A stretch of 64,000 nt of DNA from Diplonema japonicum (Eukaryota; Protista; Euglenozoa: Diplonemea). Under the pieces are notes generated by a model, which did not search any database, was not told the DNA's origin, and saw only the letters and a list, made by a program, of their open reading frames with translations. Below are positions 62,322 to 64,000 of this stretch, in pieces. Position 1 is the first letter of the stretch; every line of letters begins with the position of its first letter. Location: contig OZ025691.1 of assembly GCA_964019335.1 (NCBI GenBank), positions 484,998 through 548,997 on the forward strand, given 5' to 3'. A program made the position numbers and the translations under genes.

Positions 62322-62512
62322 ACCAACGATTCTAAAGCTACAGTTTCTGTACTTTATTGCTGGTGCCTGCCGCCTCTGCCTGGGTTTGCCGCTGCGTCCG
62401 TCGTCCGTCGTCGCCGTCGTCCGGGGGGGTTGTTTTGCCTGTCGGCCTGCCCGCCGCTTACCGAAAGGATTCCCTCCCCACAAACCCGCACGAGAAAAAA
62501 AAAAAAAAAAAA
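62322..62512 (+). mobile_element. SL-capped, poly(A)-tailed short non-coding retrocopy (SINE-like), unit 1
   Basis: ACCAACGATTCTAAAGCTACAGTTTCTGTACTTTATTG (62322-62359) is a euglenozoan/diplonemid-type SL exon. It has no GT donor after it, then a 135-nt GC-rich body and A18 (62495-62512). Confidence 0.7.
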
Positions 62513-62513
62513 T

Positions 62514-62688
62514 ACCAACAATTCTAAAGCTACAGTTTCTGTACTTTATTGGTCGTCTGTGTTTTTGTTGGTGCCTGCTGCGTCCGCTCGGTGTCCGTTC
62601 GTCGTCGTCTGGGGGGGTTGTTTCGGCCCGGCCCGCCTGCCGTTTAGCAAAGGATCCCCTCCCCCCTCAACACAAAAAAAAAAAAAAA
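62514..62688 (+). mobile_element. SL-capped, poly(A)-tailed short non-coding retrocopy (SINE-like), unit 2
   Basis: SL exon at 62514-62551 (1 mismatch to unit 1), a 122-nt body homologous to unit 1, and A15 (62674-62688). Confidence 0.7.
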
Positions 62689-62882
62689 TAAAAATGGACC
62701 CTAGACGAAACGTCGTCGGAGACCGCCGCCCGCAGGAGGAACGCCTACGAGAGACGCCGACCAAGCCGACCACCCGACCAGACCGAAATCTGGCCGGGCA
62801 GTATGACCCCTCCCCTCCCCTTAGATCCCCTCTAGATGTCGTCAAAAATAATAAAAAACATAAAAAAATAGAACCACCCGCA

Positions 62883-64000
62883 GCAAACCCGCAAACCCGC
62901 AAACCCGCAAACCCGCAAACCCGCAAACCCGCAAACCCGCAAACCCGCAAACCCGCAAACCCGCAAACCCGCAAACCCGCAAACCCGCAAACCCGCAAAC
63001 CCGCAAACCCGCAAACCCGCAAACCCGCAAACCCGCAAACCCGCAAACCCGCAAACCCGCAAACCCGCAAACCCGCAAACCCGCAAACCCGCAAACCCGC
63101 AAACCCGCAAACCCGCAAACCCGCAAACCCGCAAACCCGCAAACCCGCAAACCCGCAAACCCGCAAACCCGCAAACCCGCAAACCCGCAAACCCGCAAAC
63201 CCGCAAACCCGCAAACCCGCAAACCCGCAAACCCGCAAACCCGCAAACCCGCAAACCCGCAAACCCGCAAACCCGCAAACCCGCAAACCCGCAAACCCGC
63301 AAACCCGCAAACCCGCAAACCCGCAAACCGCAAACCCGCAAACCCGCAAACCCGCAAACCCCGCAAACCCCGCAAACCCCGCAAACCCCGCAAACCCGCA
63401 AACCCGCAAACCCGCAAACCCGCAAACCCGCAAACCCGCAAACCCGCAAACCCGCAAACCCGCAAACCCGCAAACCCGCAAACCGCAAACCCGCAAACCC
63501 GCAAACCCGCAAACCCGCAAACCCGCAAACCCGCAAACCCGCAAACCCGCAAACCCGCAAACCCGCAAACCCGCAAACCCGCAAACCCGCAAACCCGCAA
63601 ACCCGTAAACCCGCAAACCCGCAAACCCGCAAACCCGCAAACCCGCAAACCCGCAAACCCGCAAACCCGCAAACCCGCAAACCCGCAAACCCGCAAACCC
63701 GCAAACCCGCAAACCCGCAAACCCGCAAACCCGCAAACCCGCAAACCCGCAAACCCGCAAACCCGCAAACCCGCAAACCCGCAAACCCGCAAACCCGCAA
63801 ACCCGCAAACCCGCAAACCCGCAAACCCGCAAACCCGCAAACCCGCAAACCCGCAAACCCGCAAACCCGCAAACCCGCAAACCCGCAAACCCGCAAACCC
63901 GCAAACCCGCAAACCCGCAAACCCGCAAACCCGCAAACCCGCAAACCCGCAAACCCGCAAACCCGCAAACCCGCAAACCCGCAAACCCGCAAACCCGCAA
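62883..64000. repeat. Telomere-like octamer tandem array (AAACCCGC)n / (GCGGGTTT)n, ~139 units, running off the window end
   Basis: Near-perfect 8-mer array. Variants: 7-mers near 63325 and 63481, four 9-mers at about 63356-63391, and one C>T at 63606. Confidence 0.97.

Follow-up and report, generated by a model that had tools for sequence, protein, structure and literature searches.

Telomere-associated non-LTR retrotransposons are known from several eukaryotes, namely HeT-A, TART and TAHRE from Drosophila, SART1 and TRAS1 from Bombyx, GilM and GilT from Giardia and Zepp from Chlorella. Those of the Drosophila type are oriented with the poly(A) toward the centromere and are shortened at the 5′ end by erosion. 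A link to the spliced leader (SL) is known from trypanosomatids, in which SLACS, CZAR and CRE1-2 use SL nt 11/12 of the SL RNA genes as their insertion site and are confined to the SL arrays.

The nearest described parallel for SL sequences in genomic DNA is found in dinoflagellates, whose retrogenes carry relics of DinoSL (PMC6050394, PMC5585692, PMC12014239). As for diplonemids, the genome paper of D. papillatum gives 39 nt for the SL exon and 75 nt for its intron and notes SLACS-like RT models, while telomere structure is not reported there (PMC10161547). The HiFi/Hi-C assembly of Diplonema japonicum YPF1604 comprises 62.30 Mb with a longest scaffold of 1.19 Mb, and its main text mentions neither telomeres, retrotransposons nor the spliced leader (PMC13598402). 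In the literature that we searched on diplonemids, neither SL-headed retrotransposons nor telomere repeats were found.

Here we examined a stretch of 64,000 nt from Diplonema japonicum, referred to as the window, together with the 62.5 Mb genome (longest piece 1,191,308 nt). An earlier note, made from the window sequence alone, had proposed that two adjacent units near its right end are a SINE-like family of SL-capped, retroposed small RNAs. We consider it highly probable that they are instead two 3′-truncated stubs, from two subfamilies of a telomere-associated LINE-like retrotransposon, lying in a chromosome-end stack.

Composition of the two units

The layout that the earlier note gave was confirmed, coordinates included. 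Window 62322-62688 holds two head-to-tail units, each made of a 38-nt SL, a body and an A-run, and the two SLs differ at 1 of 38 positions. Unit 1 consists of the SL at 62322-62359, a 135-nt body (62360-62494), A18 (62495-62512) and a lone T (62513), and unit 2 of the SL at 62514-62551 with a single mismatch (G7A), a 122-nt body (62552-62673) and A15 (62674-62688). The 23-nt core of the SL occurs exactly twice in the window, with 0 occurrences expected from 100 shuffles. When the whole units are aligned, SL counted in, their mean column identity is 84%, and the shared motifs listed before are present in both.

It was also right that the bodies have no credible ORF, as none was found within either of them; yet the A15 of unit 2 is followed by TAAAA and then by the A of a start codon, and this ATG (62694) opens a long element ORF. 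This ATG, the terminal array from 62883 and the end repeat with CGAG in unit 1 (62481-62494) had all been missing from the earlier description. The region forms the final 560 nt of the transition from unique to repeated sequence at the right end of contig C44, which is 548,997 nt long; the window covers its positions 484998-548997, so that the contig ends exactly at window base 64000. The two units lie ~190 nt from the terminal array of ~139 GCAAACCC copies that closes the contig. The features identified, all on the plus strand, are as follows.

62322-62359, plus: SL copy 1, 38 nt, identical to the authentic SL RNA gene over its exon except that the A presumed to open the 39-nt SL is lacking
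62360-62480, plus: 5′UTR of the A-type telomere-associated retrotransposon, ~nt 54-176, from the alignment to the element on C84; 98–99% identical to more than 40 copies
62481-62490, plus: CAAACCCGCA, which is 1.25 units of the chromosome-end repeat, inside the 15-mer AACCCGCACGAGAAA
62491-62494, plus: CGAG, opening bases of the recurrent unit CGAGAAATAAAGCAATCACTTGG..., found after ...CCCGCA in every instance read
62495-62513, plus: A18 and T, with three candidate origins
62514-62551, plus: SL copy 2 (G7A)
62552-62693, plus: B-type 5′UTR including the conserved A-rich leader (62674-62693), within the 99.2% match to element nt 1-370
62694-62882, plus: initial 63 codons (MDPRRNVVGDRR...) of the predicted polyprotein ORF, which in the full copy has 2,990 codons (AlkB-like/OTU/RVT_1)
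62883-64000, plus: terminal (GCAAACCC)~139.5 array up to the contig end, meeting the element at a 2-nt GC overlap

The description of the bodies as structured was not supported, as their folding z-scores against dinucleotide shuffles were only -0.77 and -1.21, and the structured-RNA reading was dropped. Although the overall folding of both 5′UTRs is no better than that of shuffles, the motifs common to both subfamilies, G7TTGTTT and GGATCCCCTCCCC, pair together in both predicted folds (window 62416-62479 and 62609-62665).

SL-headed retrotransposons and their truncated copies

Judging by sequence, the bodies are the 5′UTRs of a LINE-like retrotransposon of 8-11 kb, one from each of its subfamilies A and B, since the heads continue into the ORF of full RT-encoding copies. 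A motif common to both bodies, CGTCGTCYGGGGGGGTTGTTT, has 83 occurrences in the genome, which correspond to 83 element heads. With few exceptions, copies on the minus strand are found close to the start of a contig and those on the plus strand close to a contig end; thus, nearly all heads are subtelomeric and directed toward the ends rather than dispersed. For the body of unit 1, at least 41 near-identical copies (93–100% identity) were found, almost all within ~10 kb of a contig end and pointing toward it. Of the ~45 heads that we read, nearly all have the A-rich tract in an internal position, continuing with ATGGATCCAAGACGG in the A-type or ATGGACCCTAGACG in the B-type (the heads resembling unit 2, at which the tract runs on as ATGGACCCTAGACGAAAC...) and leading to an ATG and an ORF.

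The full elements start with the host SL, then GT, then a 5′UTR of ~140-170 nt that closes in the A-rich leader. The full B-type copy on C24 is 10,659 nt long, and the ATG at its nt 180 starts an ORF of 2,990 codons in which OTU (E 1e-10) and RVT_1 (E 1e-18) domains were detected. The A-type copy at the end of C84 (8.2 kb) has a 2OG-FeII_Oxy_2 domain (AlkB-like, E 5e-12) in the ORF directly after the A-rich tract, followed by OTU and RVT_1, and its 3′ end reads ...CAAGTCCCCCTTTTT-A7-CCCGCAAA...; the A-type 3′ ends run ...CCCCCTTTTT, then A7 to A14, then the end repeat. Full elements are thus predicted to encode an AlkB-like/OTU/reverse-transcriptase polyprotein. They lack LTRs and carry a 3′ poly(A), as non-LTR retrotransposons do. 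No APE- or REL-type endonuclease domain was matched in the polyprotein by Pfam at E<=5. The distant RT homologues, from marine metagenomes, dinoflagellates and animals, are unnamed proteins annotated with RVT_1 alone at ~33% identity, and were uninformative for assigning the RT to a clade.

On C24 (7.2-39.1 kb), four full-length B-type elements were found in tandem, spaced 10,659 nt apart wherever the distance was measured, and the copies read there end ...GGGTGCGG-A9-CT immediately before the next SL. Such even spacing suggests that the copies multiplied by recombination and were not inserted one by one.

Unit 2 is collinear with this RT-encoding full-length element, as expected for a non-LTR fragment. 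Window 62514-62884 aligns with the C24 element over nt 1-370 at 99.2% identity, with 2 mismatches and 1 gap, and 63 codons of the element ORF are left in it. A perfect end repeat begins at 62883, overlapping the element by GC, right after an element-internal CCCGCA, one of five in the element. Unit 2 is therefore a young B-type copy which misses the 3′ 10.3 kb and is capped directly by the end repeat, and what had been taken for its poly(A) is the conserved A-rich leader before the start codon.

Unit 1 corresponds, as far as the alignment tells, to nt 1-~176 of a 3′-truncated A-type copy. Its SL is fused straight to UTR nt 54, and the 15 nt GTCGTTCGTGTTCTG, present between SL and UTR in all other A-type heads read, are missing; read contigs show the canonical form too. 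The joint follows ...GTTCTG and a canonical AG acceptor, which was sought there, is absent, therefore canonical trans-splicing fails to explain this variant. At other heads (C3:993804, C37:578662, C77:83975 and C37:576523), the SL is joined to other internal points of the 5′UTR, or the SL/UTR junction carries a deletion. Since the joints differ among heads, the 5′ junction of the family is variable.

The 3′ side of unit 1 is different as well. After ...CCCTCCCCA, it reads CAAACCCGCA CGAG A18, as opposed to CAACACACACTTT, A-rich tract and ATG in the family; the stub is thus followed by 10 nt of end repeat, by the opening 4-7 nt of a further recurrent subtelomeric unit and finally by the A-run. 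The 15-mer AACCCGCACGAGAAA occurs 19 times in the genome, always in subtelomeric positions, compared to 0 in a reversed control and ~0.1 expected by chance. The tail of unit 1 is thus composite. The A18 is no simple tail of an SL-bearing RNA, because the signature of end repeat and CGAG precedes it; three sources are conceivable for it and the T, namely the A-run that belongs to the CGAG unit, a genuine tail from retroposition, or the A-type leader followed by the AT of the ATG.

The A-rich leader is itself poly(A)-like, and heads stop there both in the window and at the end of C11, so one might suppose that unit 1, and unit 1 only, is a genuine head-only retrocopy, made by an RT primed on this internal leader rather than on the 3′ poly(A). 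We find this improbable, as the 17 nt that lead up to the A-run (CAAACCCGCACGAGAAA) are an exact match to the recurrent unit of end repeat and CGAG and differ from the A-type leader context CAACACACACTTT.

We give even less credence to the original proposal, in which the units belong to a SINE-like family copied from non-coding RNAs of ~170 nt that were trans-spliced and polyadenylated. The units do resemble SL, body and A-run, and two stubs (unit 1 of the window and the one at the C11 end) stop in or beside the A-rich tract. On the other hand, nearly all of the ~45 heads read go on to the ATG and the polyprotein ORF, and among them no short unit with its own terminal poly(A), at which many copies stop, was found. 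Unit 2 reaches the ORF inside the window, while end repeat and CGAG stand between the body of unit 1 and its A-run, so neither A-run serves as the poly(A) of such an RNA. Dispersed copies were not seen, and no target-site duplication flanks the window units. What survives of the proposal is that the copies derive from an SL-bearing RNA, its source being the 8-11 kb retrotransposons rather than small RNAs. The claimed new class of SL-capped SINE-like small RNAs is absent here, and the idea can be dropped.

Equally hard to credit is an assembly artefact or cDNA contamination, with an arrangement absent from the genome, for although short-read unitigs leave the A18 junction unbridged, breaking at the SL and A-run repeats, the published assembly is based on 102x PacBio HiFi with QV 59 (PMC13598402), dozens of contig ends show this architecture with differing flanks, and the contig is continuous from single-copy genes through the units to the end repeat. 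The junction between unique sequence and SL upstream of the units is covered by a 225-nt short-read contig that reaches merely 10 nt into the SL.

The SL heads and the ends of the chromosomes

The authentic SL RNA gene consists of the SL, GTACCCAATC... and a T-run, and adjoins 5S rRNA. Its intron reads GTACCCAATCTGATCCATGATC... and closes in the T-run, and reads continue likewise. The SL copies beside 5S rRNA continue GTACCCAATCTGATCCATGATCAATAAACC...CCTCCTTCCAAGGAGAGGAACTCGAGACAC and end in a T-run. The 5′ boundary of the gene falls between ...GGTTA and ACCAACG..., and in read contigs the SL is preceded by ...GGGAGGTTA. The 5S rRNA genes at C15:778588 and C59:511924 adjoin SL copies, the authentic SL RNA genes being arranged there in pairs ~350 nt apart (C15:778588-779463 and C59:511924-512792). 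A body that is simply the SL RNA intron, the possibility against which the earlier note had guarded, was thus rejected: the intron of the gene is unrelated to the window bodies, and the read contigs agree.

In the whole genome, 215 SL copies are dispersed, and they head several unrelated element families. Within a set of 20 internal SL copies, GT comes directly after the SL in 14 of the 18 read that are outside SL genes, which resembles a retained 5′ splice-site dinucleotide. One B-type copy at C12:~811.9 kb (C12:811393-812124, minus strand), which points inward and lies ~9 kb from the contig end, carries a full SL, a relic SL (TTTCTGTACTTTATTG) and the B-type UTR. The relic is cut after the SL's own CAG. 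A relic SL of the dinoflagellate type thus occurs in the family through this copy, neither window unit having one, and the pair of full and relic SL suggests that an element transcript was trans-spliced again.

It had been suggested that the SL is either added anew in each cycle or carried by the family as its own head. Both parts find support here, since the family carries the SL as its head and, judging from the C12 copy, it is re-added at least sometimes. The near-identical SLs on diverged bodies, from which this had been argued, reflect two subfamilies, and each unit is ~98–99% identical to its own relatives. The G directly before the first SL had been thought a possible copied cap, which we discarded as a general feature because G precedes the SL in just 4 of 35 full heads.

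Genome-wide, the end repeat is on the minus strand at contig starts and on the plus strand at contig ends; therefore, its C-rich strand always runs 5′ to 3′ toward the end. The 8-nt GCAAACCC repeat forms the physical contig ends, with a strand polarity opposite to that of canonical telomeres. A TERT-like gene was detected at C41:533974-534300 (Telomerase_RBD, 28.4 bits, in a 1,086-codon open frame). As is characteristic of telomere-associated elements, the copies lie at chromosome ends beside the end repeats in oriented head-to-tail stacks; their sense strand points toward the end.

In 7 cases, the SL heads are preceded by end repeats, and otherwise by cut same-sense elements without intervening repeat. 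These upstream elements are cut at nt 684, 1398, 1949, 3362, 4432, 4566, 5000, 5648, 6772 and 7947. Ahead of full heads there are chains of SL stubs 18-45 nt long, at least 12 in total. If elements of 8-10 kb eroded uniformly, far fewer stubs this short would be expected, although the set of loci is biased, as they were chosen for carrying heads and the junction statistics share this ascertainment bias.

We propose that the element is transcribed and that its RNA would bear the SL, sometimes newly trans-spliced on. Reverse transcription would occur at an end-repeat array, the likely primer being the G-rich strand, ...GGGTTT-3′, paired with the poly(A). This primer is suggested because the poly(A) is followed by CCCGCAAA at all three poly(A)-to-repeat junctions read, and such priming would yield the observed orientation, with sense toward the end. 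Distal 3′ parts would be lost afterwards. The stubs may have originated by terminal erosion and new addition or by abortive stuttering while the 5′ junction was made; we rate the two about equal, and the excess of very short stubs favours some stuttering.

The junction found in unit 1 recurs elsewhere: an end repeat always ending ...CCCGCA, then CGAGAAATAAAGCAATCACTTGGTTTTTT..., was observed 19 times (e.g. window 62481-62497 and C46:495.5-496.1 kb). In the CGAG junctions read, differing truncated upstream sequence is followed by 8, 10, 10, 10, 12, 13, 14, 18 or more nt of end repeat, and the antisense strand of the junction reads ...CUCGUGCGGGUUUG.... Where the CGAG unit is long, it leads via a TG-rich stretch to the final ~100 nt of the A-type element and a poly(A). 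As the long form runs into the A-type 3′ tail, the CGAG unit may be a non-autonomous partner of the A-type element. It would be either such a partner with a repeat-like 5′ end, or the result of read-through past the boundary of an RNA template. On C46, a run of N at ~495.2-495.4 kb lies between two apparent chromosome-end stacks, so this scaffold may join two chromosome ends.

A more speculative and rather unlikely reading is that diplonemid ends are built outward onto the C-rich 3′ strand by start-anchored copying of templates. The pieces, i.e. SL-headed copies and the units of CAAACCCGCA joined to CGAG..., would then start at a defined template start and have a variable 3′ cut. An RNA template of 10 nt (5′-UGCGGGUUUG-3′) would have its boundary at the constant ...CCCGCA/CGAG junction, in front of which exactly 10 nt of repeat are often found, and would sometimes be read through; the tail of unit 1 would be one such read-through event. 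If true, this would be a telomere of inverted polarity shared by a telomerase-like enzyme and retrotransposon cDNAs.

A body acting as telomerase RNA was also considered, because GGGTTTGC, one exact G-strand unit of the end repeat, is present in the A-type 5′UTR (window 62382-62389) and CAAACCCGCA stands before A18. It was rejected, as in every copy read the UTR leads without a break into a coding element, and the 10-mer is part of a different, recurrent junction. GGGTTTGC is kept in the A-type heads read and absent from the B-type; with ~0.03 occurrences expected, its presence could be due to chance.

Comparison with known systems

Relative to the literature searched, what is new is a set of euglenozoan retrotransposons with the host SL as their first 38 bases, stacked at chromosome ends with the 5′ ends preserved, and the fact that such stacks adjoin an end repeat of 8 nt whose strand polarity appears to be inverted. 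The findings are relevant to how mobile elements are expressed in trans-splicing genomes and to whether an acquired SL is inherited or renewed, as well as to the maintenance of chromosome ends in diplonemids, an abundant marine group.

The likeness to SINEs and to small-RNA retrocopies mobilised by LINEs, such as U6-L1 chimeras, is superficial and lies in a small-RNA-like head followed by an A-run. Unlike these, the units have no defined short 3′ end and no dispersed copies, and the head is contiguous with a coding element.

With SLACS, CZAR and CRE1-2, the diplonemid elements have in common that they are euglenozoan LINEs with SL sequence linked at the 5′ side. However, they are telomeric and not inserted inside the SL RNA gene at SL nt 11/12; the heads carry SL nt 1-38, so that the whole 38-nt exon forms the first bases of the element, without the SL intron.

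As in dinoflagellate retrogenes, a genomic SL is found at the 5′ end of retroposed copies, and in one B-type copy a relic SL is cut at an internal AG. The difference is that here the SL heads autonomous retrotransposons and not retrocopies of host genes, relics are rare, and the SL is usually followed by GT.

The telomeric elements of Drosophila, Bombyx, Giardia and Chlorella are alike in being LINE-like, confined to chromosome ends and stacked head-to-tail in one orientation, with truncated copies capped by or interspersed with telomeric repeats. A junction of poly(A) and repeat at a fixed phase is shared with SART1 and TRAS1 in particular. On the other hand, the diplonemid elements start with the host SL, their predicted polyprotein has AlkB-like and OTU domains, and the end repeat is an 8-mer with its C-rich strand running 5′ to 3′ toward the end. 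Compared to the elements of Drosophila, with their centromere-facing poly(A) and 5′ truncation, and to those of Giardia, the arrangement is a mirror image, as the copies retain their 5′ ends but lack the 3′ ends, and the sense strand points toward the end of the chromosome.
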